Positions 261 through 57,506 of a stretch of 64,000 nucleotides of DNA are shown here, piece after piece. How positions within the stretch are numbered: position 1 is the stretch's first letter; each line of letters starts with the position of its first letter. The notes beneath the pieces were generated by a model. The model made no database searches. It worked only from the letters and a program-made list of their open reading frames with translations, and had not been told where the DNA came from. Where the stretch lies: the sequence record PV037725.1; one strand, given 5' to 3'. Made by a program: the position numbers and the translations under genes.

Positions 261-294
261 CATAAAGCCCCGACCGAAAGGCCGGGGCAATATG
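261..294. terminator. Bidirectional CATA-hairpin-TATG terminator-like element
   Basis: CATA aa GCCCCGACC GAAA GGCCGGGGC aa TATG between convergent genes. Confidence 0.8.
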
Positions 295-299
295 CTGTC

Positions 300-3224
300 T
301 TAGACTGGTTCGAGAGTATGACGATACCAGTTGAAAATCAGGTCGTCTTCAATGGTCAACTCTTGGTTAGGGAGTACAACCAGTTTCTGACGTACCGACA
401 ATCGTACTGCGTCATCTTCAACCGTGATGATGGCGTAGTTGTTAGTACCACCAAGACCTTTGGTTTCGATAGCCATTACTTCATCACCAGAGGTTTCAGT
501 CAGACGACTGGTAGCCTCAGAGATACTGATAGTACTACGTTCCAAGAACTCCGCGATGGTACTCTTAGTGTTAGCAATCAAACCTGGGCGAATGGTAGGG
601 TTGGTATAACCCGAACGACTAAGGTAATAACTGAAGCTAAAGGACTGGTCTACTGGGATAGTGATCTGTTGACCTTCACGGATCGATGCAACGGTATCGC
701 CGAACGTGGTGGTGGGGTACAAGAACAACTCAGCTTCACCCAACAGTCTTGAATCTAACAACTCAATGTCATTATCAATCCAAGTTACCAACTGCATCGG
801 GATCTCTTTGGCGTAAGTCGCTGCTTCACGTTCACTAGCAAAGTAATATTTACCGTCAACCATGAACAACGTGGTTTCGTACTTAAGCTTTCGAGCAGCA
901 ATCAAAATCGGCTGACCATCCGCGTTGTACATCGGATCACCAATACGGTGATCGTAGACAGGCTCACCAGCGTCAGTCAGTACTGGATCACCCACCCGGT
1001 GAAGGATATTGTACGACAAAGAACCATCTGGGTTGATAGTGATTACAACGTTACCGTTAGCATCGGTCTCGTAAACAGTCTGGGTGTAATAAGCTGGTAC
1101 GTTAAACTCATACTTCTTATACGACTCAGAACTAATCACTGGACGACTACGGCGCCACAGTTTCGTCATCTCATAGCCAAACACGGTTTCTAGGATTTCA
1201 CGAGTAACGCACATGAACTGGGCTGGGAGCAAATGAGTTTGCACCAGATCGTCAAGCTCGTTAGGTTTATACCCTGGTGTAACAGAGTTAACCACGCAGA
1301 TTGTAACAGCTAGGTTGGTATTCAGTGGAGCGAAGTAACCATTCTGTACAGTACTGAACATCGACATGTTAGTTGTGCGCAATGCATTACTAGCGTTAAT
1401 GTCAAAGTTAGTCATGATATCGAATTGGTAGATCGGCTCACCTTCTTGACGACCTAAGAACGTACCGTTAACAGAGGCCCAACGCGATTCACCAGCTGGT
1501 TGATAACCGATTTGTAAAACAACCTGATCGTCTTCCAGCTGCTTGAACTGCTCGCTCGTCTCAAGTACTACACGAATCCGATAACCACCTTCGATACGAT
1601 TAATGTCGTAAGAACTAATGGCTGCTTGCAGGTTAGCTGAATCGTTCTCACCCACAAACGTCTTAGTGGTGATGGTTGGATTATCCAGGTAGTAAGGGCG
1701 CATCTCAAAGTTGTCGTTAGAGATGTCCATCACGTTGTGCAGTGGCGAGTAAACGTATCGAGCGTTGTTAACTTCACGCGCACACTGTTCAGCCGGGATC
1801 GTATTAAGACGTGTAATCTCCGAGTCAGGTAAAGGTGTGACCTTACCGTTGTTGTAGTTATACAACATGCTTGGGAGAATAGTCAGTCGATTACCGTTGT
1901 CCGATACGTGAGTCGAACCGCCGAAGGAGTCCATATCGAATGTGATCTGAGACATCGCCACACCAGCACCAGACGTAATATCCAGATTACCCGTAGTCGA
2001 CATACGTCGAGCAGCAAGGTATTGCAGGTCAGTGATGTTATCGATGTTGGTAACCAGATCATAGCCACGACGATCCAGCGCCGAAGACAACTGAACGTTA
2101 GTGATCGGTAACTGCATTGGACCTAAGGTATTGTTGATCACCTGTTCCCGCAGTGTAGCGAACGACATGGCGTTAGAACCACCACTTACTCGACCACGGG
2201 CCAACACCTGTTGTGTAGTCAAGGTATTCATGGGTGCAGTAAACGTTTTATTGTCGTCAATCGAATTGAACGTAACTGAGAAATCAGCTTCAGCCAAAGT
2301 CGAGAAGTCTACGTCTACCGGGCCTTGGGTGGAGTAGATGTCGATACGAATCGAACCCTGCGCCAGTCCAGTAGTTACGTATACCACTGGGATGGTAGCA
2401 GTGAGTTGCCCAGTCGTAACTTTGAAAACCACCGTAAGCTTTTCTGGATCGTAAGTCAATGCACTATGGGTAGTGTTGATCTCTTTCCAAGTGGTTTCAT
2501 TGTCGGTGGAGATATAAGCTCGAGCATAGAAGAACTGATCATCTACCAGATAGGTCTTTTGGAACAGTGCCGACGGGTTCAGTGTATCGGTGTGAGTGTT
2601 GATAGCAAACTGTTGAACGGGGATACTCATCACCATCAATCGACGACGAAGGTTATCCACTTTAGAAGTCATCATCTGCCATTGAACAATGTTAGTAGTC
2701 AGCGTCTCAACCGGAGATACCATATCAAGCACGTATTCAACGTTGATACCGCCGTGACGCATCACAGTCATCTGAATTGGATACTGCATGGTGAATGGCA
2801 TCTTACCCGCTTGGAACTGAGTAAAGCGTGGGATTACTAAACGCTTCAAACCTTGATCACCGTAAGGCACAGCTTTCGAAACGATCTCGTCGTAGTCTAA
2901 CACCAACATGAACGGAGTAGATGCTGGGTTAGCAAAGCGACCCAAGTAGTCATCGTCAGCCATGTGTGCGTAAAGCTCATCGGGCGTAACTGCTTGACGA
3001 CCGTACAACCGACGCATTGACGCTTCGATATGGTTAACGTTAGCCGCTGTCTCCATACTCCCGCATTCCATCAGATAAACAAATGGTAGTGTCCCATCGG
3101 GTACATCGTAAGTTGGATTGTTAGGATCTGGGTTGAGCTGTGAATCTAGTTCGTTCATTACCAACGACTGAATCAAACTCGGGTTGTTAAGGATCTCGTA
3201 AAGATTGTCTTTAAAGCTACTCAT
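300..3224 (-). CDS. Virion structural protein, baseplate wedge-like (phiKZ gp87-like)
   Basis: 974 aa beta-rich ORF; GGSNAMSFATLREQVINN resembles the GG-x-D/N...LR motif of baseplate J/gp6-type wedge proteins; position next to the inner-head cluster matches recalled phiKZ order. Confidence 0.65.
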   Translation of the reverse strand: MSSFKDNLYEILNNPSLIQSLVMNELDSQLNPDPNNPTYDVPDGTLPFVYLMECGSMETAANVNHIEASMRRLYGRQAVTPDELYAHMADDDYLGRFANPASTPFMLVLDYDEIVSKAVPYGDQGLKRLVIPRFTQFQAGKMPFTMQYPIQMTVMRHGGINVEYVLDMVSPVETLTTNIVQWQMMTSKVDNLRRRLMVMSIPVQQFAINTHTDTLNPSALFQKTYLVDDQFFYARAYISTDNETTWKEINTTHSALTYDPEKLTVVFKVTTGQLTATIPVVYVTTGLAQGSIRIDIYSTQGPVDVDFSTLAEADFSVTFNSIDDNKTFTAPMNTLTTQQVLARGRVSGGSNAMSFATLREQVINNTLGPMQLPITNVQLSSALDRRGYDLVTNIDNITDLQYLAARRMSTTGNLDITSGAGVAMSQITFDMDSFGGSTHVSDNGNRLTILPSMLYNYNNGKVTPLPDSEITRLNTIPAEQCAREVNNARYVYSPLHNVMDISNDNFEMRPYYLDNPTITTKTFVGENDSANLQAAISSYDINRIEGGYRIRVVLETSEQFKQLEDDQVVLQIGYQPAGESRWASVNGTFLGRQEGEPIYQFDIMTNFDINASNALRTTNMSMFSTVQNGYFAPLNTNLAVTICVVNSVTPGYKPNELDDLVQTHLLPAQFMCVTREILETVFGYEMTKLWRRSRPVISSESYKKYEFNVPAYYTQTVYETDANGNVVITINPDGSLSYNILHRVGDPVLTDAGEPVYDHRIGDPMYNADGQPILIAARKLKYETTLFMVDGKYYFASEREAATYAKEIPMQLVTWIDNDIELLDSRLLGEAELFLYPTTTFGDTVASIREGQQITIPVDQSFSFSYYLSRSGYTNPTIRPGLIANTKSTIAEFLERSTISISEATSRLTETSGDEVMAIETKGLGGTNNYAIITVEDDAVRLSVRQKLVVLPNQELTIEDDLIFNWYRHTLEPV

Positions 3225-4303: not shown

Positions 4304-4339
4304 TTTAATTAACCTCTTTTATGATTAAAGGAAGAGACT

Positions 4340-5548: not shown

Positions 5549-5559
5549 GGGGTCTCCAG

Positions 5560-6453: not shown

Positions 6454-6462
6454 GGAGGCACC

Positions 6463-8291: not shown

Positions 8292-8322
8292 CATACTGGG
8301 AACCATTACGGTTCCCCTTATG
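8292..8322. terminator. CATA-hairpin-TATG element
   Basis: CATA ct GGGAACC ATTAC GGTTCCC ct TATG, 3 nt after the stop. Confidence 0.7.
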
Positions 8323-10289: not shown

Positions 10290-10320
10290 AGGAAGGTGGT
10301 CTAACCGCCTTCTTTATTTT
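10290..10320 (+). terminator. Intrinsic terminator
   Basis: GAAGGTGG/CCGCCTTC stem followed by TTTATTTT. Confidence 0.7.
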
Positions 10321-12976: not shown

Positions 12977-13000
12977 ACGGGACCTTCGGGTCCCGTTTTT
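12977..13000 (+). terminator. Intrinsic terminator
   Basis: ACGGGACC TTCG GGTCCCGT TTTT. Confidence 0.85.
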
Positions 13001-13014
13001 ATTCAGGTGTCATT

Positions 13015-17021: not shown

Positions 17022-17053
17022 CATATTGCCCCTCCTTCGGGAGGGGCCTTATG
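17022..17053. terminator. CATA-hairpin-TATG element
   Basis: CATA tt GCCCCTCC TTCG GGAGGGGC ct TATG. Confidence 0.85.
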
Positions 17054-17086
17054 CCGTAATCTTATGATCTTTTAATGAGGTGTAAG

Positions 17087-21043: not shown

Positions 21044-21045
21044 TC

Positions 21046-23423: not shown

Positions 23424-23431
23424 TATATTAC
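23424..23431 (+). promoter_or_regulatory. phiKZ-type early promoter (TATATTAC)
   Basis: Exact TATATTAC preceded by TTTTAAAGCC, upstream of the first gene of the accessory island. Confidence 0.75.
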
Positions 23432-24165: not shown

Positions 24166-24195
24166 CATACTGCCAGCCTATGGGCTGGCTTTATG
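24166..24195. terminator. CATA-hairpin-TATG element
   Basis: CATA ct GCCAGCC TATG GGCTGGC tt TATG. Confidence 0.85.
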
Positions 24196-24220: not shown

Positions 24221-24228
24221 TATATTAC
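24221..24228 (+). promoter_or_regulatory. phiKZ-type early promoter (TATATTAC)
   Basis: Exact motif; shares the 20-mer CTATATTACTTTTGTGAATT with the 23423 promoter. Confidence 0.75.
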
Positions 24229-28705: not shown

Positions 28706-28733
28706 GCCCCTCCTAGTGATGGGGCATTTATTT
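28706..28733 (+). terminator. Intrinsic terminator variant
   Basis: GCCCC...GGGGC followed by ATTTATTT. Confidence 0.6.
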
Positions 28734-28749
28734 CGTTAGGAGCTTTATC

Positions 28750-29430: not shown

Positions 29431-29468
29431 TATAAAGCCCCTCCTTTACGGGAGGGGCATTTATTTTT
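29431..29468 (+). terminator. Intrinsic terminator of the GCCCCTCC family
   Basis: TATA aa GCCCCTCC ttTACG GGAGGGGC ATTTATTTTTT. Confidence 0.8.
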
Positions 29469-33665: not shown

Positions 33666-33697
33666 CATAAAGCCCCTCCGCAAGGAGGGGCACTATG
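33666..33697. terminator. Bidirectional CATA-hairpin-TATG element
   Basis: CATA aa GCCCCTCC GCAA GGAGGGGC ac TATG between convergent genes. Confidence 0.85.
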
Positions 33698-36056: not shown

Positions 36057-36258
36057 AGGTCTACCTGATCAGGGTTTTAAATAACATACGATTGAATTAA
36101 AATACTGGCTTGTCCAACACTGTGTACAGAGACCCCCTCTAAGAGCATAGGCCCGCCCGTAGGGCTTTTATTTCTTATATTAACTACGGTTACGTTAGTA
36201 ACCAATGCATAGCTTTGATAGACTCCTTAGTGCTGTTAGCGTAGCTGTGTAATATGGA

Positions 36259-36293
36259 CATAAGCCATCCCCACAAGAGGGATGGCATTTATG
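36259..36293. terminator. CATA-hairpin-TATG element
   Basis: CATA a GCCATCCC CACAAGA GGGATGGC att TATG after the Kelch gene. Confidence 0.75.
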
Positions 36294-36296: not shown

Positions 36297-37784
36297 TTAC
36301 CAAGGAAAGTTAGTGGACGTGATCTTGATCAATGGTCGGATATTGGCTCGACCACTACTGCTGTTAAGAGTAGCACCCTGTGCACCAGGATCTGTACCAC
36401 CACGTGCCCACGTATCATAAGCACCGTTAGCCAAGCGTGTCCACTCGTAACTGGCGTTAGCACCTGCACCAAACCCTAAGGTGGCATTATCCCACAAGGC
36501 CAGTTTAGGAATAGGATTTAGTGTGTAGCTCTTACTAACACGGGCAAACAACTTAGTCCAAGGTTCGGTAGCACCAGTGTTAGTGTTAGCCGGTCCATAC
36601 CAGGTCATGCTGACACCTTGGATCATTTTACCAGTACCAGATGGACTATATGCATAAGACGAATCTAATGGACAGTTAGTCCGCAATGGTTTCTGAGGTA
36701 ATAACCAAGTCTCATTGTCAAAGCGCATTAGTATCCAGTTCATACCTTCATAGGTAGCTGTACCAGCTGTGGATAGCGCGCCCGCAGTAGTGAACTCACT
36801 CGCAGTCATGTATTCTTGGAATGGGATAACGACCAAGGTAGGTTTAGGCTTACCTACATATGGATCATAAACCCAAAATTCGGTACCAGTCAACGAACCG
36901 ATCGTGTAGAACTTCTCTTTGGCTTTAAAGCCATAGGAATACAAATTAGCTTGAGCCGGAATTGTGCCAACGTTGTCGGTGAATGTATTAGTCCTAGGAC
37001 TATACTTCGACATCTTAAGACTATCTGACCGCCCGCCCCAATAGAAGATCTCATCGCCAAACAGCGTAGCTTTCGCACCAGAGCGTACACCGTAATCGGT
37101 AGTGATATCGGCAACCTTGGTTGTCCAAGCGTTAGTAATAGGGTCATAGCACGTTATAGACTTGTTTGTGACTGTACCGTTAGTGTTGACACCATAGGCT
37201 ACAAAAATCTTATCGTCCTGTACGCAAGCCGAACCGTTGAGCACCATGCCCGGCATAGCTGGTAATGTAGTCCAAGTGTTAGCCACTGGGTTATATTTAA
37301 CTGCGTTAGTCGTACCTGCGGTTGGTGCGTCACCATAACCACCACCCATGATGTAGACATCCAAACCAATGTTAACCATCATGGCTTGTGCACAACCTGG
37401 TCTGTTCGCCGCTGCTGGCATAGTACCCGCTGCCCAGGTATTAGATGAGATTGTGTAGATGTAGAAGCGACTGGCGTAACTAGTCCCATCATAACCACCC
37501 CAGACGTACAGTTTACCAGCACCCATAACACATCTATGTAAACGCATTGCTACTGGCATATCTGCCAATTTAGTGAATGTGTTAGTAGACGGGGTAAATT
37601 TATAAAGACTGGCTATTTCTTTGGCTGCGACGTTGTCAAACCCACCTACAAAATAAATATCGTTTTTATAAGTGGATACCGCCTGTTCGGTAATACCGAC
37701 CGGTGCGTCCGTTGCACTCAATTTTGTCCACACTGTAACTGGAGGAGTCGAAATCCCCGAAGTGGCTAATAATAGATCAATCAT
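36297..37784 (-). CDS. Kelch beta-propeller fused to a phiKZ-family virion domain
   Basis: Six Kelch repeats (IYFVGG, LYVWGG, VYIMGG, IFYWGG; YNPVANTW); C-terminal WILMRFDNETWLLPQKPLR...RG...IRPLIKI; N-terminus MIDLLL. Confidence 0.8.
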   Translation of the reverse strand: MIDLLLATSGISTPPVTVWTKLSATDAPVGITEQAVSTYKNDIYFVGGFDNVAAKEIASLYKFTPSTNTFTKLADMPVAMRLHRCVMGAGKLYVWGGYDGTSYASRFYIYTISSNTWAAGTMPAAANRPGCAQAMMVNIGLDVYIMGGGYGDAPTAGTTNAVKYNPVANTWTTLPAMPGMVLNGSACVQDDKIFVAYGVNTNGTVTNKSITCYDPITNAWTTKVADITTDYGVRSGAKATLFGDEIFYWGGRSDSLKMSKYSPRTNTFTDNVGTIPAQANLYSYGFKAKEKFYTIGSLTGTEFWVYDPYVGKPKPTLVVIPFQEYMTASEFTTAGALSTAGTATYEGMNWILMRFDNETWLLPQKPLRTNCPLDSSYAYSPSGTGKMIQGVSMTWYGPANTNTGATEPWTKLFARVSKSYTLNPIPKLALWDNATLGFGAGANASYEWTRLANGAYDTWARGGTDPGAQGATLNSSSGRANIRPLIKITSTNFPW

Positions 37785-37820
37785 TTTTGAAGCCTCTGTT
37801 AAATTTCATACGATTGACGA

Positions 37821-37852
37821 CATAACGCCCCTCCTTGCGGAAGGGCAATATA
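37821..37852. terminator. CATA-hairpin variant
   Basis: CATA ac GCCCCTCC TTGC GGAAGGGC aa TATA. Confidence 0.7.
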
Positions 37853-37853
37853 T

Positions 37854-38246
37854 TCAAGAACTGACTTCGTTATAGTAGTCACGTTTGATAGTGTCGAAAT
37901 AAGGGTCACTCACGTTGAGTTCAAGATCATAGAACAATGTTGCATACCCACTTACATCTAACTGCATGTGACTCCAGTCAGGGTGAGACATTGGTTTCTG
38001 ATTAACCTCAATTAGAATACTGTGCATTAGATACAATCGTTCTTTTGCAAGATTGAATGCACTATAAGTAGTACAGTCCGTAGGTCCCCACTGCTCGTTC
38101 TCAGCCACGAAAGAAGTAACTGCGGTCATTACACTGATTACGTTCTGTTCGGCCGCGTAGACGCATATAGAGTCACCCTGACGGTATTTGACTCGATGTT
38201 GTAACGTACCTACGATCTTTTCAATGAAATGGTCTACATAAGCCAT
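37854..38246 (-). CDS. Hypothetical protein
   Basis: 130 aa; TAATG coupling. Confidence 0.65.
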   Translation of the reverse strand: MAYVDHFIEKIVGTLQHRVKYRQGDSICVYAAEQNVISVMTAVTSFVAENEQWGPTDCTTYSAFNLAKERLYLMHSILIEVNQKPMSHPDWSHMQLDVSGYATLFYDLELNVSDPYFDTIKRDYYNEVSS

Positions 38247-38572
38247 TAGGTGTTCTCCGTGTAATCAAAGATAATTGCGGTCAATCCACCAACAGTCAGT
38301 GTAAGGTGGTTACGTTGATCATCGAAGGGTTCAGGTTTTTGCCAAACGTCGAAACGAATGTTGTAGTGCTTCTCAATAAAAGCTTTGAGACTCTTAAGAT
38401 CCGTAGCCTGAAGGAAGAATACTAGGTTAGCCTGCTCCAGTAGTTTGTCGATAACTGGAATAAGGTTTTGTCGTGCTACATAAACACCAATGAACGCATT
38501 TTGTTTGATGTTGATAGCCAAACGGATTTGTGTAATGATGTCGTGTACCAGGTGGTCAATGTTTGCGGTCAT
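38246..38572 (-). CDS. Hypothetical protein
   Basis: ATG at 38572 (MTANID...) after SD AGGGA; the longer track start crosses a terminator. Confidence 0.6.
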   Translation of the reverse strand: MTANIDHLVHDIITQIRLAINIKQNAFIGVYVARQNLIPVIDKLLEQANLVFFLQATDLKSLKAFIEKHYNIRFDVWQKPEPFDDQRNHLTLTVGGLTAIIFDYTENT

Positions 38573-38585
38573 GTCTGAGTTCCCT

Positions 38586-38630
38586 AATAAATGCCTCTCC
38601 TTCGGGAGAGGCAATATGTCGTTTTCTTTT
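38586..38630. terminator. GCCTCTCC-UUCG hairpin terminator after the helicase gene
   Basis: AATA aat GCCTCTCC TTCG GGAGAGGC aa TATG tcg TTTTCTTTTTT. Confidence 0.8.
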
Positions 38631-40166
38631 TTATCGGTCCCAGGCATCATCGCCGTCTTCGGCAAGATTATTACCCGGTAGCGATTTAAGGCAGTAGTCT
38701 TCGTCCTTATCGATGTCCCATGGCATAGTACCTACAGGGTTCATAGGAATGATTACCCGTTGGTCTTCCACTGGCGTAAGCACGTTACGGTGTTTACCAC
38801 GTTGCAGTTCAAAGTACGCTTTACCTTTATGACGAACGATCTGGTGGAAGATCTCAAGATCAGGTTCTTGGCCCAGTCGACGGCAACCATCGTAGAAACC
38901 ACGGTTAGCAACAACCCTCAAGAAGTCTTCAGTGTTTTCCCGCATGATCTGCAAAGCATCTGACGACATCTGATGCGGAGATAGGAATGTGATACCACGT
39001 GGCGAAGTGTAGTTACGCATCCGACGGAATAACAGACGAATATCATCACCAGCTACTTTAGCATCCAGCCCAGTCTTAGGAAGCATGTTAAGGTAATCGA
39101 CACAAAGAAATTGTAATTCAAAACCCTGAGCTTGTAAGCCATCAAGATAGTTGACGAAACCAGCTACTGTAAATTCAGTAGGGTCGAATCGAATCATCTT
39201 AGCTTTGAACCCGTTCTCTTCAAGTCGGGAACATACATAGGCCGCAGCCTCGTGTTTGTTTACATGATTCCTAACTACGGGTTCACCGGTTTCGTTTTCC
39301 TTAAGGTAGCAATACATGTGCATCAAGTTGTCTGAGATTTCGTTCTCAAGTGTTACGAACAAAACCAGAGGCTTCTTAGTGGAGTCACGCATGAATGGTT
39401 TGTTGAAGATACAAATATGCAAGAACACGAACATAGCAAAGTAAGACTTACCTTGGTGTTGTAGTGCGGAAGTAATGATGAACTCACCACGGCGCAATGC
39501 ACCCAATGGACCGAGCAAACGGTTAACACCTTTCCACCCCAAACGGAATGCACCATCTGGTGACAACGTGTCTTGAGCTTTCTGGAAGATGTCCTCTACG
39601 GCATCAGGGTCGTCAAAGTCAATACTACCCATCTCAGCAGGGTGTTTGGATTCAGCACGTGCTTTTACATAGGGTTCGAGCTTGGCACCCATCTCACTGA
39701 CCATACTAACAATGTCCAAGTTACCTCGGTCTTGGAAGATCAGCTTTTGGGAATATTCTTTTACAACAGTCTTAATAGTTACATCGTTGAGATAGACGTT
39801 TAAGGTACCACGGCGACTATTAATAGAGCGCATGATAGCCATGCCATCAGGAAAGTTCTCCAGTACACCCTGTTCAACAGAATCGTATAGATAAACTTCA
39901 TCACGGCAACTAACCCGAACCAGTTGCAATACTTCTTGCAGACCAGGAAAAGCATTCTTTGGTTTCTGGTTGAGTTCATTAACCAGATTACGTAGCTCTA
40001 GGAATGTCTGTCGACCTTGGTCATGGTCAGCTGTCGTTTCTTTGACGTCTAGAGATGTTACAACCTTCTCGATCAATTCAGTTGATGGAGATGCAGGAGA
40101 ATCTTCACGATGTTCCAGGCATAACAATGTTACACACTGAACTAGAAGCTGTTTAGGAGAAGCCAT
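38631..40166 (-). CDS. dnaB: DnaB-like replicative helicase (phiKZ gp118-like)
   Basis: Walker A variant SALQHQGKS, FVTLEN, Walker B VDYLNML, LSPHQMS, GKHR arginine finger; adjacent to the capsid gene as in phiKZ. Confidence 0.85.
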   Translation of the reverse strand: MASPKQLLVQCVTLLCLEHREDSPASPSTELIEKVVTSLDVKETTADHDQGRQTFLELRNLVNELNQKPKNAFPGLQEVLQLVRVSCRDEVYLYDSVEQGVLENFPDGMAIMRSINSRRGTLNVYLNDVTIKTVVKEYSQKLIFQDRGNLDIVSMVSEMGAKLEPYVKARAESKHPAEMGSIDFDDPDAVEDIFQKAQDTLSPDGAFRLGWKGVNRLLGPLGALRRGEFIITSALQHQGKSYFAMFVFLHICIFNKPFMRDSTKKPLVLFVTLENEISDNLMHMYCYLKENETGEPVVRNHVNKHEAAAYVCSRLEENGFKAKMIRFDPTEFTVAGFVNYLDGLQAQGFELQFLCVDYLNMLPKTGLDAKVAGDDIRLLFRRMRNYTSPRGITFLSPHQMSSDALQIMRENTEDFLRVVANRGFYDGCRRLGQEPDLEIFHQIVRHKGKAYFELQRGKHRNVLTPVEDQRVIIPMNPVGTMPWDIDKDEDYCLKSLPGNNLAEDGDDAWDR

Positions 40167-40294
40167 GTCAAATCCTTGTAAAAATAGTGGAGTGCATCGT
40201 GTATCATTTATCTTACTAGTATTAGTTTGTAGCCTCTTTACAGCACTATGAATATGTAGAACTTTAACCCCTCTGAACCAATAGGTTTCGTGAT

Positions 40295-40837
40295 ATGGTC
40301 CAACTGCTAGTATTACCTGAAGCTGTTTACGAACAGTACAAAGTAGATGGTGTCCAATTTAACCGATTGTTAGACACTAACTATATAGCTTGTGCAGATG
40401 TAAGTTCGGTCAATGATCTCGCTCAGATCGACCTTGCATTGAATCAATTTCCTTTCGTGTTCTGCCCAGGTACTGGAGTAGTCTTGGCCCACAGTCCACG
40501 AGTTGGCATTGCAATTGCATCCACTTCTGATCATGAAGAAAAGTTTAGGATGCAAGATTTGCATAATGCTTTAGAGGAACGCGTTGAAACGCTTTCGCTT
40601 CGTCTCGCTAGCCAACCACAGTTAGTAAGCGAATATTCCCTTTATCCTGTAGATGAGAATCTTTGGGTTGCGGTGCAGAAGAGTCTGCCTATCACCAATA
40701 GCGATCCTGAACGGTTATCTATTATTAGTAACCGCCCTTTCTTTGATAGTATGATTAATGAGTTGCTGAGAACCTGCAAGATCAGTCAGGTAGCATCAAC
40801 GAATCTCTTCAACTATTATCTTATGTCTAAGGTCTAG
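40295..40837 (+). CDS. Conserved head-associated protein (phiKZ gp119-like)
   Basis: 180 aa between the helicase and capsid genes; synteny. Confidence 0.55.
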   Translation: MVQLLVLPEAVYEQYKVDGVQFNRLLDTNYIACADVSSVNDLAQIDLALNQFPFVFCPGTGVVLAHSPRVGIAIASTSDHEEKFRMQDLHNALEERVETLSLRLASQPQLVSEYSLYPVDENLWVAVQKSLPITNSDPERLSIISNRPFFDSMINELLRTCKISQVASTNLFNYYLMSKV

Positions 40838-40913
40838 TTCCGGTGAAAAATAGATCTTTCACATTTAGATACTTGTTTAAAACCAATACCCATCCTGCGT
40901 AGGAAATACATTA

Positions 40914-43154
40914 ATGAAACATCTCAAATCTCTGAAGTCTGTACTCAAAGCTACCGCCGCTGATCATCAAACTTTCTCCATGGAAGGTTTCGTGTCTGGC
41001 ATGAAGAAAGAAGACACTCTGGCAGATGGTCTGTTCTCGGTTGCTGAACGCGCCGAAAGCCTGATCGAATCGATCGGTACCGAATCGTTCGGTGCCAAGC
41101 ATGACGACGCGCAAATTGCTGTTGGTCTGTACAAGCAAATCTCGAAAATCGCACGTGACTACGGTTTCGAATCGTACCTGTCCGCTGACGCACGCGTTGC
41201 CGAGAACCAACTGACCGCTGCTGTACTGGGTGCCCTGGCTGCAACCAACACCACCAAGTACATCAAAGCCCTCCGTGGTGTATCGAAAATCGTTCCTTCG
41301 AACGAAGACATCAAAACCATTACCCAGAGCTATAATGGCCCTGCTGGTGGTCTGGACGTATTCACTGGTGACGAAACCAAAGCAGTAGCTCTGGAAAACT
41401 ACAACGAGAAATCTCAGCGCGACTTCCGCGTTGTAACCGTTGGTTATAACCTGGCTGCTAGCCGTCAGGACGAGTTCGCTGAACGTATCTACCCAACCAC
41501 CGTTATCAACCCTATCGAGGGTGGTGTGGTTCAGGTATTGCCTTACATCGCTGTAATGAAAGACGTTCATCACCAAGTTAACGGCGCTCGTTGGAAGAAC
41601 GACGAAGTGAACATGGTAGAAGCATACCGTGATCCGTCGATCCTTGACGACAACGCTACTGACCTGATCCCAGCTATCGATCCAGCTGGTACCAACGCAC
41701 AGTACTTCGCTGACCCAGCTCTGATTCCTCCAGAAGTTGTAGTTAACGAACAAAACCTGTCCATCGAAACCGCTCCTCTGAAGCCTGGTATTCGTCTGGA
41801 CCTGATGGGTAACTCCAACGCCAACCAGCTGATCGCTGCTAACATGCTGGACGTATCGGACACCATCGACCCTGCTGGTCGCCTGAAAGCTCTGTACATC
41901 AAGTTCCAAGGTAAAGTTATCAAGTTCAAAGTAGACCGCATGCCACGTGCTGTGTTCCAACCTGACCTGATCGGCGATACCCGCGGTGCCAAAGTTGACT
42001 TCTGGACCGATGACCTGACTGTATCTGCTGTAACCCGTACTATCGATGGCGTTCAAACTGCCGCGATGACTGAGCTGGAAGCTCGTGGTTGGGTACTGCG
42101 TCTGAGCGTAGACTTCACTGGTAACGTTTCCACTTCTCGTGGTGACAGCCGCTTCACTAACGGTGATGCTTCGATCTCTAAGATCCTGAACGCTGACCGT
42201 CGTGAAATCGACACCACTGCTGGTGACGGTAAAGTCCTGGTAGATACCATCACTGATCTGGAAATTGTTGGTTTCGAACTTCAAGTTCGCTTCACTAACA
42301 CTAACCGTCGTCAGCGTGGTCACCTGCTGCAAACTCGTGCTCTGCAATTCCGTCACCCAATCCCAATGCACGCTCCAGTGACTCTGCCACTGAGCACCAT
42401 GGAAGATGAAGGTCCAGGCGAAGTTGTTAAAGCTCTGACTGTTAACACCAACATCCGTAACAGCAACAACGCTGTTAAGACTCTGTTGAACTACCTGGCT
42501 CAACTGCGTGAGCTGACCGGTAACGGCTTCAACCGTCCAGTCATCAACGTGTACGAAGGTGCTCTGGCCGCTGTAATGCGTCCGACCTACCACTACGACA
42601 CCATGCACCTGCCAGACATGATCGACACCCTGAAGTCGAAAGACCGTTGGGACGACGTTTGCTCGGCCATCCTGAACAAAGTTAAAGGTATCCTGTTCCC
42701 AGCATACCGTAACTCGAACATCGAAGCTGCCTTCCGAGTAATCTCGGGTAACCAAGACGAGCGTCCGATCTTCCTGTTCTGCACCGACAAAGAAATCGCC
42801 AACTACCTGATGACCAAAGGCGACGACCGCACCCTGGGTGCTTACCTGGAATACGACATCGTATCCACTAACAACGAACTGTTCGACGGTAAGTTGGTAG
42901 TAGTACCTACTCGTAAAACTCCAGTTGAGAACGACATCCTGAGCTTCGGTCAGTTCTTCTACGTTTCGACCATCATCGCTGACCTGCCTATCACTCGTGG
43001 TGGCAACCAGGTTACTCGCGAGATCGCTGCGATTCCATTCAACCTGCACATCAACAACGTTCCGTTCGCTATCGAATTCGACGTTACTGGTTTCGAACAG
43101 GTAATGGGTCACTCGATGTGGAACAAACCAGTGGTTGACGCCCTGGCTGCCTGA
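40914..43154 (+). CDS. Major capsid protein (phiKZ gp120-like)
   Basis: 746 aa; strongest codon bias in the window; propeptide with SME, GTE, GFE and ALENY motifs; RQDEFAERIYPT and C-terminal PFNLHINNVPF typical of phiKZ-like capsid proteins. Confidence 0.9.
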   Translation: MKHLKSLKSVLKATAADHQTFSMEGFVSGMKKEDTLADGLFSVAERAESLIESIGTESFGAKHDDAQIAVGLYKQISKIARDYGFESYLSADARVAENQLTAAVLGALAATNTTKYIKALRGVSKIVPSNEDIKTITQSYNGPAGGLDVFTGDETKAVALENYNEKSQRDFRVVTVGYNLAASRQDEFAERIYPTTVINPIEGGVVQVLPYIAVMKDVHHQVNGARWKNDEVNMVEAYRDPSILDDNATDLIPAIDPAGTNAQYFADPALIPPEVVVNEQNLSIETAPLKPGIRLDLMGNSNANQLIAANMLDVSDTIDPAGRLKALYIKFQGKVIKFKVDRMPRAVFQPDLIGDTRGAKVDFWTDDLTVSAVTRTIDGVQTAAMTELEARGWVLRLSVDFTGNVSTSRGDSRFTNGDASISKILNADRREIDTTAGDGKVLVDTITDLEIVGFELQVRFTNTNRRQRGHLLQTRALQFRHPIPMHAPVTLPLSTMEDEGPGEVVKALTVNTNIRNSNNAVKTLLNYLAQLRELTGNGFNRPVINVYEGALAAVMRPTYHYDTMHLPDMIDTLKSKDRWDDVCSAILNKVKGILFPAYRNSNIEAAFRVISGNQDERPIFLFCTDKEIANYLMTKGDDRTLGAYLEYDIVSTNNELFDGKLVVVPTRKTPVENDILSFGQFFYVSTIIADLPITRGGNQVTREIAAIPFNLHINNVPFAIEFDVTGFEQVMGHSMWNKPVVDALAA

Positions 43155-43241
43155 GATGGAAAGGGTAACTACCGTTACTTTGAAGATGGTACACGCATCC
43201 GATACGAAGAGGACGGCGTTGCCCGCCGACTAGAGCGGTAA
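43155..43241 (+). CDS. Putative UGA read-through extension of the major capsid protein (28 aa)
   Basis: In frame after the TGA: DGKGNYRYFEDGTRIRYEEDGVARRLER then TAA; terminator lies only after the second stop. Confidence 0.6.
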   Translation, partial: DGKGNYRYFEDGTRIRYEEDGVARRLER

Positions 43242-43249
43242 CACTAGAA

Positions 43250-43281
43250 CATACTGCCAGTCCTTCGGGACTGGCTTTATG
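43250..43281. terminator. CATA-hairpin-TATG element
   Basis: CATA ct GCCAGTCC TTCG GGACTGGC tt TATG. Confidence 0.85.
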
Positions 43282-43365
43282 TTGTCTTTTACCTTAATAC
43301 AAATTATTTCAAATTTATATCATGATTGTGTAATTAATATCAATCCTTAACCAAAGGACCCGATC

Positions 43366-43872
43366 ATGAGCTTCTTAGCGAAATATTGGAATGCTGTTGA
43401 ACGAGCTGTATCTGAAACCGGAATGAACCCAGGTGACATTATCGTTAACATCGCAGAGGTGATTAAAAATACTGAAGTGCATGATGATGTAGACTTCCAC
43501 GTGAGTAATATCCCTGATCCTAAACAAACCACTACACCGGCTAACGCTGGTTCTATGCCCCATCGTAAACCTGACATCGGTGCTATGGAAGAAGCTGCTC
43601 GGAGGGCGGCTAGACCAGGCGAAGAATTCGACCAGTTGGAAGAAAGACTCACCTGGCCAAAAGCCAAAGTACGATCCGTACGAGACACAATGGCAAAGAC
43701 AGACACCGAACGGCCCAAAGCTAGAGGTAAGACGTCCAAAGCGATTCGTAAGGCCGAGCGCAAGAAACTGAAGAAGCTGGGTGGTGGTAGAAAAGTGAGG
43801 TTGGTTATTGACGAGGTACGTATAAATGACAGAGCAGTATGGCCTAAGCCCTCGGCAGACCATAGACCATAA
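43366..43872 (+). CDS. Hypothetical protein with Lys/Arg-rich C-terminus
   Basis: SD AAAGGA; KARGKTSKAIRKAERKKLKK; AT-rich promoter region upstream. Confidence 0.65.
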   Translation: MSFLAKYWNAVERAVSETGMNPGDIIVNIAEVIKNTEVHDDVDFHVSNIPDPKQTTTPANAGSMPHRKPDIGAMEEAARRAARPGEEFDQLEERLTWPKAKVRSVRDTMAKTDTERPKARGKTSKAIRKAERKKLKKLGGGRKVRLVIDEVRINDRAVWPKPSADHRP

Positions 43873-48600: not shown

Positions 48601-48634
48601 CATAAATGCCCCTCTTCGGAGGGGTAACTAATGG
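48601..48634. terminator. CATA-hairpin variant
   Basis: CATA aat GCCCCTC TTCG GAGGGGT aac TAATG. Confidence 0.7.
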
Positions 48635-49187: not shown

Positions 49188-49217
49188 CATAGTGCCCTCC
49201 TACGGGAGGGCGTTATG
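49188..49217. terminator. CATA-hairpin-TATG element
   Basis: CATA gt GCCCTCC TACG GGAGGGC gt TATG. Confidence 0.85.
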
Positions 49218-49239: not shown

Positions 49240-49247
49240 TATATTAC
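49240..49247 (+). promoter_or_regulatory. phiKZ-type early promoter (TATATTAC)
   Basis: TTTTTAAAGCG TATATTAC, same upstream context as the 23424 promoter. Confidence 0.75.
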
Positions 49248-51103: not shown

Positions 51104-51135
51104 TATAAAGCCCCTCCGTAAGGAGGGGCAATATG
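51104..51135. terminator. Bidirectional TATA-hairpin-TATG element
   Basis: TATA aa GCCCCTCC GTAA GGAGGGGC aa TATG, then a T-run. Confidence 0.85.
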
Positions 51136-51582: not shown

Positions 51583-51589
51583 AGTCACC

Positions 51590-52456
51590 TCAGTTGTAAT
51601 GGAGCAGTAAGTAGCCACCCAGGCCGGTTGAAAGATCGCCTAACAGTAACACACAAACATTTCGAATGTCTTTACGTGGACTGTAACGTGGTAGCACTAC
51701 ACCGTTGTACAGGACTGACAGGCGTGCTTCACCTGAGACGACTTCACCAGCAATGTTCCATTCACCAGGCTCGACTGTACATGTAAATGGATAAGCAGTT
51801 TTATCGTTCAACAGTGCCGCTAACTTACGACCGCTAGGCCATACCGAACTAGGTGAGAGCTGTTTGATGAAATCACGATCACTCGTGAAATCAAAACCAG
51901 AGGTAGTGTATTGTGCAACTACCTTACTGATAACACTACCCAGAGGTCGAGCATTAGCTTGTTCTAGTTCCAGCCGATCACCAACATTAGGTAATAGCTG
52001 TTTAGTGGTATTGACCAGTTGGAAGTCAACCGAACCCACGAACCGCAGTGATTTCTCGTTAGCGGTAAGCGTGTAGGTCTTTAGGTATTCATCGTAACGA
52101 ACGTGAACGAAATCATTCAGTGTAAATACGATGTCATTCAACTCACTAATGGCATCTAACACTTTAAAGGTGTTAGTTGGTAAGGCGAACCCACTAAGTT
52201 GTTTGGTACCCACGAAGAACGTACTGAGATCAATACGATCGTACAGGTAATTCTCACGAGTTACCACCGGCTGTGTGTTGTTCGGGTCAATGCTACGATG
52301 AGCATCAACCTCGATTTGTGTACGCGTGCCACCCAAGGAGGTAAACGTCTTCAATGTGGCAGTGTAGGGTGTCAGGTCAGTCTGATAGACTTCATTGATC
52401 CGATTGATTACAGCTGTCCAAGGATCAGCCTTCAAATAGTCTTTTGTGCTATACAT
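51590..52456 (-). CDS. Virion structural protein (phiKZ gp127-like)
   Basis: 288 aa; YLYDRIDLS...KSLRFVGSV motif typical of this jumbo-phage baseplate-associated family. Confidence 0.6.
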   Translation of the reverse strand: MYSTKDYLKADPWTAVINRINEVYQTDLTPYTATLKTFTSLGGTRTQIEVDAHRSIDPNNTQPVVTRENYLYDRIDLSTFFVGTKQLSGFALPTNTFKVLDAISELNDIVFTLNDFVHVRYDEYLKTYTLTANEKSLRFVGSVDFQLVNTTKQLLPNVGDRLELEQANARPLGSVISKVVAQYTTSGFDFTSDRDFIKQLSPSSVWPSGRKLAALLNDKTAYPFTCTVEPGEWNIAGEVVSGEARLSVLYNGVVLPRYSPRKDIRNVCVLLLGDLSTGLGGYLLLHYN

Positions 52457-52458
52457 AC

Positions 52459-54630: not shown

Positions 54631-54665
54631 GGTAAGATACTCACTTAGTAATTTGGGAGTTTTAA

Positions 54666-57467
54666 ATGGCTCAAAGTAAGAAAGTGGATACTTATCCTAA
54701 ACTAGCGGCCCTTCGTTTGGGTCATGCTGCAACTCCGACTAACGCTGTGTTGAACAGCTTACGGAAAGGCATTCATGATGCAACTGGATCGGCATCACAA
54801 CCCAAAGTGGATGTGAACCGCTTTACTATGGATAAGGTGTCCCGTCAGACATCGCAAGATCAGACTGACTCTGATGCAGTTATGCAACTGCTACCAGAAC
54901 TACAGTTGGTTAAAACCGTAACCATTGGTACGACACTCGACCCTAAGTCGATGTCTGAATCTAACCTTACGTTCACTGTTGACCCCACTGTGTTTGACAG
55001 TGAAATTGGCAAGCTATTGCTTGAGCCAATTGAAAACTTCTTTAAGAAAGACTATAAGATTGACGACCGGCTGGACCTCATCCTCACGGACTGTCTATTT
55101 ACTAAAGGTTCATCGGTTCTTTGCGTACTGCCTGAGAATACCCTTGACTCTCTAGTCAACGGTCGGCAAAGAATGTCCATGGAATCTTTCGAGCAGATTC
55201 GTAACCACGTAACTGCCTCGAATAACAAACCATTAGGTTTCCTAGGTTCACCTAAAGCACACAAGGATGGTGTTAAAGTTTCGCTGGAATACCACAACGG
55301 TGTATCGGCTGAAGCGACTGTGAAGGGTTACGCTGAGCATCTGAAGAAAGAGGTTACCTTAGAACACATCACGGTAACTGACAACTTTGATGCACTGAAG
55401 ATTCCGGGTATGTCACAACGTATCCGTGAGATGACGATTGCTGACAAACTCAGGTCTCGTAAGGTCTCGATGGAATCTGAAGTACACCACTTCAAGAACG
55501 CTGAGATCGAGCAGCTTTATCAGGCTACCCACTCTACGTCGGAACAAACTCAGGTGATCAGTTCACCTAAGTACATGTCTCGTCCGTCGGTCGGCCATCC
55601 TCTGATTCTACCACTCCCACCTGAATCGGTTATTCCGGTATTCGTATCAGGTCGACCTTATGAACACATCGGCTACTTTCTGCTGGTAGACCATAACGGT
55701 TATCCAGTATCGAAGGACTCCACCCGTGACTTCTATGGTGAGATGCAATCGGGTTGGAAGTCTGGTACCGGTGGTGGTAGTAACGCTCAAGGCTCAAGTG
55801 AGATTCTTCGTCTGACTCGTGAAGCAATGGGTGACAACGGTAACAAATCTGAATACGAAGTGGATCATATCCAACAGGCATTCAACGCTATTCTGACCAG
55901 TGACCTGAACAACCGTCTCCGTAACGGGATGTACGATCAGGAAATTGAGATTGGTATGGCTCAAGAGATCCAACGGATTATGCTGTACCGTAGCTGGCAG
56001 GCTAAGTCCACCCAGTTGGTATTCGTACCCGTAGAACTCATGACCTACATTGCTTTCGACTTCAACAAGAACGGCATCGGTGAAACACTGATCGCTCGTA
56101 CTAAGATGTTGTCGACAATGCGTACTACCTTGCTGTTCGCTGAAACCATCGGCGGTATGCGTAACGCAATGGGTCGTAAGAAAGTTCGTATCGAGATTGA
56201 CCCGAACGATCCAGATCCAGAACAAACGATCTCTAACATCCAGTCCGTCATTATGGAACAGACACACCGGAGCTTCCCTCTGGCTGCGCCTGACCCTGGA
56301 CAGACTCTTGATGCACTGATGCGTTCTGGTTTTGACTTCGAGATCAATACCAACGACTCTGCTTACGCTTCAACCAAAGTAGAGTTCGACGACTACAACA
56401 CTAGCGTTAACGCTGGTAACCCTGATCTTCAGGATCGCCTGCGGAGATATCACATCAGCTCCTTCGGTATTCCACCTGAGAAGGTTGACCCGATGGCCTC
56501 GCCTGACTTCGCAACATCGATTGTGAACAACGACTTGGTTACAGCTCGTGTAGTTAAAGAACGTCAGAAAGCATTGTGTGAACATCTGTCTAAGTTCATC
56601 CGTGTATTCTGTGTACATAGTTCGATCATTCGTGAACAACTGACTCAGAAGATCAAAGACAACGTATCGATGATCGTTGCCCCAGACCTGAAGAAGTTGA
56701 CCGTAGAAGAACTGATTGATGAATTCATCTTGGCTGTTAGTGTAGGCTTGCCTGCTCCTGATAACACCCAACATGAACGTCAACTGGAAGCATTGGAGAT
56801 CTACGAGCGCCTGCTGGATAAAGCACTTGAGTCTCACATTACTCCAGACATGTTCCCCGATGACCTGACTGAGGTCTCTGGCCTGGCTGATGACATCCTG
56901 TTGAATACCAAAGCACTGTTCATGCGACAGTACATGGCAACCAACAACATCATGCCTGAGCTGAGTATCCTCACTGAGATGGATGGTACCCGACCAGCAT
57001 TCAGCTTGTTGGACTTCATCAATACTCAACGTGCTACCACAGTACAAGCCTTCCTTGAATACGCTGCTGGTAAGCAGAAGTTCAAAGACCGTCTGCATTC
57101 ACTCTACAAAGAAATCATTGAGAAAGTTAATGATGGTGATAGTGGTGGTGGTTTCGGCGGCGATAGTGGAGACGACGGTGGTTTCGGTGGGGATGATCAA
57201 GGCGGCGATGACGGCGGCTTTGGTGATGACTCTGGTGGGTTTGGTGACGATGCCACCGGCGACGGCGGTGATCAACAGCTGGACGAGAGTTCACAGAACG
57301 AATTGGATACTGATTTCGATATGGGTGATGGCGATAATGCCAACGCTGTTGAGAATGACGAAGAAGATTCTGATAACTCCGACATTCAAGATCCAATGGG
57401 TGCAGCGGAAGCTGACGAAGCTGGTGACGAAGAAGAGGAAGAGGAAGACGACCTCACTAAACGTTGA
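54666..57467 (+). CDS. Portal protein (phiKZ gp129-like)
   Basis: 933 aa; MQLLPELQL, PVGHPLILPLPPESVIPV, FGIPPEKVD motifs; acidic Gly/Asp tail; synteny. Confidence 0.8.
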   Translation: MAQSKKVDTYPKLAALRLGHAATPTNAVLNSLRKGIHDATGSASQPKVDVNRFTMDKVSRQTSQDQTDSDAVMQLLPELQLVKTVTIGTTLDPKSMSESNLTFTVDPTVFDSEIGKLLLEPIENFFKKDYKIDDRLDLILTDCLFTKGSSVLCVLPENTLDSLVNGRQRMSMESFEQIRNHVTASNNKPLGFLGSPKAHKDGVKVSLEYHNGVSAEATVKGYAEHLKKEVTLEHITVTDNFDALKIPGMSQRIREMTIADKLRSRKVSMESEVHHFKNAEIEQLYQATHSTSEQTQVISSPKYMSRPSVGHPLILPLPPESVIPVFVSGRPYEHIGYFLLVDHNGYPVSKDSTRDFYGEMQSGWKSGTGGGSNAQGSSEILRLTREAMGDNGNKSEYEVDHIQQAFNAILTSDLNNRLRNGMYDQEIEIGMAQEIQRIMLYRSWQAKSTQLVFVPVELMTYIAFDFNKNGIGETLIARTKMLSTMRTTLLFAETIGGMRNAMGRKKVRIEIDPNDPDPEQTISNIQSVIMEQTHRSFPLAAPDPGQTLDALMRSGFDFEINTNDSAYASTKVEFDDYNTSVNAGNPDLQDRLRRYHISSFGIPPEKVDPMASPDFATSIVNNDLVTARVVKERQKALCEHLSKFIRVFCVHSSIIREQLTQKIKDNVSMIVAPDLKKLTVEELIDEFILAVSVGLPAPDNTQHERQLEALEIYERLLDKALESHITPDMFPDDLTEVSGLADDILLNTKALFMRQYMATNNIMPELSILTEMDGTRPAFSLLDFINTQRATTVQAFLEYAAGKQKFKDRLHSLYKEIIEKVNDGDSGGGFGGDSGDDGGFGGDDQGGDDGGFGDDSGGFGDDATGDGGDQQLDESSQNELDTDFDMGDGDNANAVENDEEDSDNSDIQDPMGAAEADEAGDEEEEEEDDLTKR

Positions 57468-57472
57468 TGCGT

Positions 57473-57506
57473 CATATTGCCCCGACCGAAAGGCCGGGGC
57501 TTTATG
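57473..57506. terminator. Bidirectional CATA-hairpin-TATG element
   Basis: CATA tt GCCCCGACC GAAA GGCCGGGGC tt TATG; core identical to the element at 261. Confidence 0.85.

Follow-up and report, generated by a model that had tools for sequence, protein, structure and literature searches.

Termination in the phiKZ-like jumbo phages has been mapped by ONT-cappable-seq. In phiKZ, a terminator motif consisting of a stem-loop and the sequence YTTATKYYGT was reported at 61 TTS, and bidirectional terminators were placed between convergent genes (Putzeys et al. 2024, PMC10914365). As described there, the motif covers only the 3' half of the elements analysed below, and the text consulted does not discuss a mirrored CATA, an unpaired 2x2 spacer or an overlap with the late promoter (PMC10914365). 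The 132 TTS that the same method mapped in 201phi2-1 include 15 bidirectional ones (Poppeliers et al. 2024, PMC11512511). Motif A of that study (n = 59) resembles the phiKZ motif and together with motif B forms an elongated hairpin; eight of the terminators were validated in vivo, where they lowered downstream expression in a terminator trap and stopped the host RNA polymerase in P. chlororaphis (PMC11512511). The word TATG is also the core of the late promoter, with G as +1 and each base required in vitro (PMC4666361), and single-stranded non-template TATG is bound base-specifically by GP123, in a pocket of the core enzyme (PMC12809450).

A family of CATA/TATG hairpins in phage Viktualia

The window analysed here is a stretch of 64,000 nt from Pseudomonas phage Viktualia (PV037725.1, 186001-250000; genome 322.7 kb), whose closest relative is 201phi2-1 (76% nucleotide identity). 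An initial annotation of this DNA had listed nine full copies and five variants of a hairpin flanked by CATA and TATG, and their coordinates and layout agreed with the window sequence when we checked them. The strict pattern CATA-NN-SCC...GGS-NN-TATG occurs seven times in the window versus 0.01 expected from 100 shuffles. It was counted 13 times in 201phi2-1, 23 times in PhiPA3 and 16 times in phiKZ, with counts of 0 for reversed-pattern controls. A covariance-model scan, which the initial annotation had proposed, was carried out on the whole Viktualia genome with a model trained on 13 window copies, and yielded 75 strand hits, or 40 loci by count, at E<=0.01. Because the model found no two-sided copies in the window beyond those already listed, the earlier list is complete for the two-sided class. 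One-sided members at 10292, 12977 and 28706 were absent from it. In total, Viktualia has about 40 two-sided elements and a roughly equal number of one-sided ones. Judged by their sequence, the CATA/TATG hairpins do not form a new class of element and are identified as the conserved terminator of phiKZ-like jumbo phages. Such terminators are ordinary for this phage group and are often built bidirectional. The sites are given below in window coordinates, with gene contexts from gene calls made with a codon-usage score.

261-294, both strands: predicted two-faced terminator at a convergent junction; the + strand virion structural gene ends at 257 and the - strand gene at 300
8292-8322, + strand: predicted terminator that follows the gene for the internal head protein, tandem + genes; 5' CATA; another TATG 5 nt downstream
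17022-17053, + strand: predicted terminator after a virion structural gene, tandem + genes; UUCG loop, 5' CATA
24166-24195, + strand: predicted terminator at the end of the structural block, tandem + genes; early promoter downstream at 24221
33666-33697, both strands: predicted two-faced terminator between convergent genes; on + a GCAA loop with an AC spacer, on - a TT spacer
36259-36293, - strand: predicted terminator after the - strand gene 36297-37784, tandem - genes; 7-nt loop
43250-43281, + strand: predicted terminator that follows the gene for the major head protein; orthologous to TTS 132,419, one of the eight validated in 201phi2-1 (PMC11512511)
43296-43320, - strand: early-type promoter-like motif that points into the 43250 hairpin
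49188-49217, + strand: predicted terminator, tandem + genes; UACG loop; early promoter downstream at 49240
57473-57506, both strands: predicted two-faced terminator at a convergent junction; stem as at 261, TT/TT spacers on +
29431-29464, + strand: variant; 5' TATA, 3' TTTATT box (K = T) and T-run
37821-37852, - strand: variant; GTTATG on the sense (-) strand, GCAA loop on -, + face TATA
38586-38618, - strand: variant after a DnaB-like helicase gene; TTTATT on -, AATATG on +
48601-48633, + strand: weak variant; 5' CATA, 3' side without a TAT box; below the model threshold
51104-51135, both strands: two-faced variant at a convergent junction; 5' TATA, 3' AATATG, GTAA loop on +
10292-10320, + strand: one-sided member; box TTTATT
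12977-13004, + strand: one-sided member; UUCG loop, box TTTTTATT; conserved in 201phi2-1 and PhiPA3
28706-28737, + strand: weak one-sided member; 5-bp stem, box ATTTATTTCGTT
40253-40256, + strand: TATG of the late promoter p119L ortholog, without a hairpin; a contrast from outside the family

Anatomy of stem, loop, spacer and box

Stems at the listed sites have 7-9 pairs, 5-8 of them GC (28706: 5 bp), in line with the phiKZ type, whose GC-rich stem-loop has about 7-9 bp and a short loop. Compensatory change was found in six of the eight pairs of the inner stem among the covariance-model hits. Loops are predominantly GNRA or UNCG, as had been claimed. At tandem junctions, 27 of 46 loops are UNCG when read on the sense strand and none when read on the antisense strand. 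At convergent sites, faces with a stable tetraloop lack a T-rich spacer in 31 of 42 cases, compared with 24 of 62 for faces with other loops; each face of a convergent element looks as if it were tuned separately.

The box YTTATKYYGT follows directly 3' of the stem, again as in the phiKZ type. Intergenic hairpins of Viktualia provide 118 sense faces, and 94 of these have TAT at an offset of 0-6, with the consensus TTTAT[G/T]YYGT (sense-face profile: T 64/88, T 72/92, TAT, K, Y, Y, G 66/94, T 66/94). Faces read TTTATG, CTTATG, AATATG or ACTATG, with an invariant A, and TAT is kept in 74 of the 75 model hits while the stem is free to vary. The TATG flank reported by the initial annotation is present in the nine full copies, but its G is not fixed across the wider family: the fourth box position in 94 Viktualia sense faces is G in 64, T in 23, A in 4 and C in 3. 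The description of the elements as U-tract-poor was likewise right only in part. Most sense faces read TTTAT or CTTAT; by direct count, about 4-5 of the 8 nt that follow the stem are U, and the uninterrupted U-rich tract of about 7-9 nt of canonical intrinsic terminators is absent. A simple terminator scan of the first 20 kb called two of three family sites, and only on the T-rich face.

The 2x2 loop between stem and box is indeed usually unpaired: it is Watson-Crick-paired in 10 of 73 elements from the four phages versus 18.6 +/- 2.5 expected, so that it is open beyond chance (P about 4e-4). Outside this loop, the 5' CATA is the mirror copy of the 3' box. Since ATA/TAT is near-invariant and lacks covariation, it behaves as a sequence signal and not as a helix.

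Position relative to genes and conservation of junctions

The elements are located at gene ends and are mostly intergenic, like the terminators of the phiKZ type. Two-sided elements occupy 16 of 25 convergent junctions in Viktualia versus 11 of 68 tandem ones, and two-sidedness relates to gene orientation in a similar way in 201phi2-1, PhiPA3 and phiKZ. The distance from stop codon to stem has an interquartile range of 7-15 nt across the four phages, and that from the box to the next start codon one of 22-77 nt. Orthologous junctions retain an element across four genera, with stems that differ and show compensation. For example, the convergent site 261 (spacers AA/AA, loop GAAA on +) has orthologous elements at the matching junction in 201phi2-1, PhiPA3 and phiKZ, and PhiPA3 and phiKZ both retain the CATA of site 17022 at their orthologous junctions.

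This conservation bears on the idea of a mobile, copy-pasted repeat of the REP or MITE kind, whose symmetry would come from its spread and not from a function. An identical 32-mer is found at three Viktualia loci, including 33666. A search of sequencing runs with window positions 37400-43399 matched only contigs of related phages, and contigs assembled from relatives stop at the 38586 element or match nothing else, as a mobile repeat might predict. However, the identical copies have unrelated flanks, the elements keep fixed distances from stop codons, and orthologous junctions keep their elements across four genera while the stems change with compensation. We consider this origin extremely improbable.

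In each of the eight validated 201phi2-1 terminators, TAT(G/A) comes after a GC hairpin and the TTS lies 1-2 nt past the box; five of the eight also have a 5' CATA. The 201phi2-1 TTS 289,834 has an AATATG face, yet its 3' end was mapped. An early-type motif facing the hairpin, as at 43296-43320, is also present at three validated 201phi2-1 terminators. An antisense face is needed at 43250 because this - strand motif points at the hairpin.

A probable terminator with two opposing boxes

Each element is very probably a terminator, capable of having two faces, of the type known from phiKZ-like jumbo phages, and we infer that the Viktualia copies themselves terminate transcription. The initial annotation had offered a symmetric terminator specific to a phage polymerase or factor as one of its readings. 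The terminator part of that reading holds and belongs to an already published type; the specificity for a phage polymerase does not hold, because eight 201phi2-1 copies stop the host RNA polymerase (PMC11512511). Transcription of a GC-rich stem with a stable tetraloop would allow the hairpin to fold in the nascent RNA, and the transcript would end within the box TTTAT-K-YY|GT, at a distance of about 8 nt from the stem; in 201phi2-1, the second Y is the end point. As the 5' CATA is the box on the opposite strand, one hairpin would serve two opposing boxes, which is why the element looks symmetric. The double box would be used at convergent genes and at sites that require a stop of antisense transcription. 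After release, pairing of CAUA with UAUG could bury the 3' end, as it does in terminators with an A-tract and a U-tract generally.

Some observations do not fit a plain U-tract model, which leaves the invariant A within the T-run and the preference for K = G unexplained, and AATATG faces still give mapped 3' ends in 201phi2-1. In addition, exact TATG occurs on 95 antisense and 100 sense faces of 334 at tandem junctions, a parity that is not obviously predicted if the 5' box were needed for antisense stops only.

Folding of the outer flanks

Another proposal of the initial annotation was that the element tags the RNA for 3' protection or nuclear export and is recognised through the internal loop. 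In the form considered here, a protein would recognise the hairpin, the 2x2 loop and the closed 3' end, for 3' protection or export from the phage nucleus. The predicted folds agree with a closed end. When the RNA is taken to end 2 nt behind the box, the CAUA/UAUG helix is part of the minimum-energy fold on both strands in 9/9 copies, where it adds -1.5 to -7.1 kcal/mol and leaves almost no 3' overhang, and the 2x2 loop that such a protein would recognise is unpaired beyond chance. Nevertheless, the outer pairs show no compensatory change, with outermost pairs other than C-G mostly unpaired (17/21), complementarity just outside the box is depleted (59 vs 88 expected), and two-sidedness follows gene orientation. 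In PhiPA3, eCLIP of ChmC, the one nucleus-associated RNA-binding protein profiled so far, gave peaks near start codons and no motif (PMC11077065). Furthermore, no specific tag function is required because any terminator hairpin stabilises a 3' end. With outer pairs that lack covariation and ChmC binding near starts, the tag proposal gained no direct support, and we regard it as improbable.

At the fourth position of the box, phiKZ and PhiPA3 show more complementarity than expected from permutation, an excess that is absent from Viktualia and 201phi2-1. RNAalifold did not predict the outer CATA/TATG helix; given this result and the depletion of complementarity one position further out, the outer helix was rejected as a selected RNA structure.

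Relation to late promoters

A further reading of the same annotation was a terminator fused to outward-facing TATG re-initiation sites on both strands, which would produce antisense RNA where genes converge. The flanks would then be late promoters, the G of TATG being the nvRNAP start, and transcription would re-initiate at tandem junctions. The late promoter core is TATG with G = +1 (PMC4666361), the element at 8292 lies only about 30 nt from the next start, and the parity of TATG between antisense and sense tandem faces would suit promoters on both sides. Against this, TATG is necessary but insufficient, and the downstream sequence decides (PMC4666361). Neither p119L nor its window ortholog at 40253 has a hairpin within 400 nt; both share TATGTAGA, common to four genera, and at 40253 the TAGA downstream of TATG is conserved in the four genera. 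The terminator boxes read TATG-YYGT, an extension absent from the bona fide late promoter, and K is T or A in about one third of faces. The elements track upstream stop codons and not downstream starts, and their loops show optimisation on the sense strand alone. Of the six tandem full copies, three (17022, 24166 and 49188) are followed by separate promoters: TATATTAC of the early type lies at 24221 and at 49240, and position 17059 has a conserved ATCTTATGATCTT. A MEME search of 201phi2-1 TSS regions (-50..+1) gave only a weak short late motif, for 24 of them, without a hairpin. The elements thus lack the context of proven late promoters, which have a downstream determinant and need no hairpin. 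Stop-codon anchoring, sense-only loops, YYGT and separate downstream promoters leave outward re-initiation unsupported, and we judge it highly improbable.

Possible reading of the box by phage polymerases

A refinement of the terminator mechanism, and not a replacement for it, is that the TATG pocket of the beta-like subunit would catch the word in the transcription bubble, a few nucleotides behind the hairpin, and pause the phage enzyme, so that the box would substitute for a long U-tract. The GP123 pocket reads non-template TATG (PMC12809450), TAT is kept in 74/75 hits with a freely varying stem, AA-spacer faces poor in U still have mapped 3' ends, and the motif is retained in four genera. 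On the other hand, the host RNA polymerase, which has no such pocket, terminates at 8/8 tested elements (PMC11512511), the 3' ends were mapped to 1-2 nt beyond the G and not on it, and K is not G in one third of faces. The box is also not confined to late units, because TATG occurs in first hairpins downstream of early-type TATATTAC promoters, which are expected to be virion-polymerase units: it is present in 23 of 67 of these, versus 243 of 538 overall, early-type promoters being a crude proxy here. Only phiKZ departs from this, with TATG in 1/18 first hairpins after TATATTAC promoters. K = G was not associated with upstream gene length, a crude proxy for late genes (Fisher P=0.76).

Multisubunit RNA polymerases share a consensus elemental pause, G-10 Y-1 G+1. 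The conserved Y|G at the 3' end fits this general consensus without a special pocket, which argues against the pocket as the cause of pausing. Overall, pausing by the pocket is unlikely. The wider proposal, in which phage polymerases would read TAT(G) via the promoter pocket, one word would both start and end late transcripts, and unpaired spacers would keep the box available, is rather doubtful.

Implications for annotation and use

The element sites mark operon ends in Viktualia and cast doubt on tiny ORFs predicted to span them, for instance at the 36259 hairpin. As a terminator, the family is compact, strongly conserved and active with host and phage polymerases alike, and it would be useful as an insulator part. 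The invariance of TAT, the preference for G and the unpaired spacer bear on a possible sequence-specific stop signal for non-canonical phage polymerases.

Comparison with known terminators and promoters

The Viktualia elements share the GC-rich stem-loop and YTTATKYYGT with the phiKZ terminator motif. Several sites have a stem other than that of their 201phi2-1 ortholog, and at Viktualia junction 261 the core of the hairpin is inverted relative to 201phi2-1. Like canonical bidirectional intrinsic terminators, they combine a GC hairpin with a predicted 3' end some 8 nt further on and with flanks that can pair, and phiKZ-type elements also work with the host RNA polymerase, as canonical intrinsic terminators do. 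In contrast to canonical terminators, their short T-run is broken by an invariant A and usually a G, a further conserved YYGT comes next, and the two nucleotides adjoining the stem are kept non-complementary; canonical bidirectional terminators pair A- and U-tracts, whereas the Viktualia-type elements keep the 2x2 loop unpaired. With the 3' end at its second Y, the box gives Y-1 and G+1 and the last stem G lies at -10, a likeness to the elemental pause that is one of sequence alone. The phiKZ late promoter (T-3 A T G+1; p119L) has the four letters TATG in common with the elements, but it has no hairpin and carries TATGTAGA downstream, whereas at the terminators the RNA ends just past the word and does not start there.

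Hairpins with a conserved TAT-containing box

We compared the whole genomes of Viktualia (PV037725.1; 322,655 bp; host P. syringae), 201phi2-1, phiKZ and PhiPA3, with genes called in each genome by a codon-usage score. The window spans positions 186001-250000 of the Viktualia record; a 2.9-kb stretch of it matches Viktualia at 100% and 201phi2-1 at 76% identity. The initial annotation listed 14 CATA-NN-GC-stem-loop-NN-TATG hairpins in the window, nine full copies and five variants (named here by their start coordinates), and the sequence at every one is as it was written there. The window contains 7 matches to the strict pattern CATA-NN-SCC...GGS-NN-TATG, where shuffled sequence predicts 0.01; 201phi2-1 has 13, PhiPA3 has 23 and phiKZ has 16, and reversed controls have none. 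A covariance model trained on 13 window copies and run against the whole of Viktualia (E<=0.01) returned 75 strand hits, which we count as 40 loci. At this cut-off the scan found no two-sided copies in the window, that is, copies with a box on both strands, beyond those already listed.

In the alignment of the 75 model rows, compensatory change was observed at 6 of 8 inner-stem pairs, and the three ATA/TAT pairs were constant in 74 rows. The outermost pair departs from C-G in 21 cases, 17 of them unpaired. The compensatory change in the stem, together with the unvarying ATA/TAT, indicates that the inner hairpin is under selection as a structure and that the flank acts like a conserved sequence word. 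Among 118 sense-oriented 3' flanks of Viktualia intergenic hairpins with at least 5 GC pairs, 94 have TAT 0-6 nt past the stem, 2-3 nt being the usual distance. The Viktualia sense flanks give the profile T T TAT [G 64, T 23, A 4, C 3] Y Y G T, in which conservation of the G and T following the YY equals that of the G in TATG. As the profile extends past TATG, this motif is a section of a longer box in which the G is replaceable. The Viktualia family is larger than its symmetric copies, and one-sided members of the hairpin-TAT family are found in the window at:

10292, one-sided member
12977, one-sided member
28706, one-sided member

The elements belong to the phiKZ-type terminator family

For 61 phiKZ termination sites mapped by ONT-cappable-seq, Putzeys et al. 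2024 (PMC10914365) describe a stem-loop with a TTAT region behind it, the 3' half of the motif being YTTATKYYGT. In 201phi2-1, 132 termination sites have been mapped, 15 of them bidirectional; motif A (n=59) is similar to the phiKZ motif and has a frequent partner, motif B, which extends the hairpin (Poppeliers et al. 2024, PMC11512511). Eight 201phi2-1 terminators with published positions were validated by terminator trap in P. chlororaphis, and thus with host RNA polymerase (PMC11512511). All eight positions fall 1-2 nt past a TAT(G/A) in the 201phi2-1 sequence, itself preceded by a GC hairpin, and a 5' CATA is present at five. Window element 43250 is orthologous to one of them, the 201phi2-1 site at 132,419 downstream of the major capsid gene, and the two have an identical stem and box.

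The window elements are members of this previously described family, mostly in its two-faced form, with a terminator role predicted in Viktualia from sequence. The terminator reading proposed initially is therefore upheld, both by the match to mapped phiKZ and 201phi2-1 terminators and by the orthology of 43250 to a validated site, but the suggested specificity for a phage polymerase is not, since host RNA polymerase halts at the validated 201phi2-1 elements (PMC11512511).

Two annotated 32-aa ORFs near these elements look like over-calls:

36190-36288, minus strand, overlapping terminator hairpin 36259
43135-43233, plus strand, taking up the interval from the major head gene to its terminator

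Contigs of close relatives (two runs) break at element 38587-38619, and the match of a contig from a more distant relative (one run) is confined to this element, the usual effect of a dispersed repeat on assembly graphs.

Two-sidedness and gene orientation

At Viktualia junctions with a strong hairpin, a box is present on both strands in 16 of 25 convergent versus 11 of 68 tandem cases, and the other three phages are similar. Published bidirectional termination sites of phiKZ are also located between convergent genes (PMC10914365). The sense-strand loop is UNCG at 27 of 46 Viktualia tandem junctions, and the antisense reading of those loops never gave UNCG or GNRA. The same sense-only polarity of UNCG/GNRA loops is seen at tandem junctions of the other three phages. 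This bias suggests that the hairpins are tuned as RNA for a single direction. At convergent junctions, a T-rich spacer is missing from 31 of 42 faces (one strand's hairpin with its 3' box) bearing a stable tetraloop (GNRA/UNCG) and from 24 of 62 faces with other loops, counts that are partly non-independent through repeated copies. It is as if each face of the convergent elements were strengthened by its own means. In two-faced terminators such as 33666, 51104 and 261, the T-rich face tends to bear the complementary, unremarkable loop.

Between the orthologous convergent junctions of Viktualia (261-294) and 201phi2-1 (record 91464-91497), the hairpin core of stem and loop is an exact reverse complement, with the flanks CATAAA...AATATG unchanged. 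As a result of this inversion, the GAAA loop and the A.C/G.U mismatch are on swapped strands in 201phi2-1.

All four genera have retained the CATA at the tandem 43250 junction. On the minus strand, an early-type promoter-like motif (43296-43320) is aimed directly at this hairpin from the antisense side, which may be the reason for its antisense face. The predicted RNA would be ~45 nt long. This layout is kept in 201phi2-1 at 132432, 183880 and 230031, beside three validated terminators, and occurs once more in Viktualia, at record position 158760.

Promoter candidates near the terminators

The initial annotation also suggested that outward-facing TATG promoters are fused to the terminators. 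On indirect evidence, this is not supported. The elements track stop codons, lying a fixed distance past the upstream one (interquartile range 7-15 nt) and leaving a variable 22-77 nt before the next start. No hairpin occurs within 400 nt of the best-studied late promoter, phiKZ p119L, which is located between divergent genes. Its orthologs in Viktualia, 201phi2-1 and PhiPA3 have TATGTAGA in common, unlike the terminator boxes, which read TATG-YYGT. Of the six full copies at tandem junctions, three are followed by a separate promoter candidate. Promoter candidates in the window include:

40253-40256, plus strand, p119L ortholog in the divergent region between a DnaB-like helicase gene and a virion protein gene
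23424-23431, 24221-24228 and 49240-49247, plus strand, early promoter word TATATTAC, just 5' of gene starts, with a TTTAAAG-like upstream part
17059-17071, plus strand, 13-mer ATCTTATGATCTT, just past a terminator and before the next gene

TATGTAGA is kept in all four phages and may be a downstream determinant of late promoters. TATATTAC is the early-type promoter consensus listed for phiKZ and 201phi2-1 (PMC7058600); 20 of its 26 copies in the Viktualia genome have a same-strand gene start no more than 60 nt away, and those at 24221 and 49240 follow two tandem full copies. Viktualia, PhiPA3 and phiKZ, from three genera, each have a single ATCTTATGATCTT, at orthologous junctions; it may serve the next gene as a late promoter or operator.

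Spacer and outer helix

Complementarity is avoided in the stem-adjacent spacer: of the 73 two-sided elements in the four phages whose spacing is 2+2, 10 have Watson-Crick-paired spacers versus 18.6 +/- 2.5 in within-phage permutations (P ~4e-4). The commonest spacer is AA opposite AA, or TT opposite TT when read from the other strand. Complementarity is also depleted immediately outside the box (59 versus 88 expected), and at the fourth box position it is above expectation in phiKZ and PhiPA3 only. Minimum-energy folds of RNAs ending 2 nt past the box contain a CAUA/UAUG helix on both strands of all nine full copies (-1.5 to -7.1 kcal/mol), so that a closed RNA 3' end is possible through this predicted pairing. 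A 3'-end protection or export tag read through the internal loop, as had been proposed, is not supported; we found nothing pointing to a specific reader of this loop, and ChmC of PhiPA3, the sole nucleus-associated RNA-binding protein profiled, binds near start codons with no motif (PMC11077065).

How the box might be read

The terminator box overlaps the late promoter word TATG, and the polymerase pocket for this word could also read the box during elongation. A recent structure of the phiKZ non-virion polymerase places single-stranded non-template TATG in a core pocket, bound by the beta-like subunit (PMC12809450). Against a pocket-read stop, host polymerase halts at the elements (PMC11512511), mapped 3' ends in 201phi2-1 lie past the G and not on it, the G is missing from one third of Viktualia boxes, and units with early-type promoters likewise end at TATG boxes (23 of 67). 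A weak-hybrid model does not account for the invariant A in the T-run or for the G preference. With the RNA 3' end at the second Y, the box also resembles the general pause consensus shared by multisubunit polymerases.
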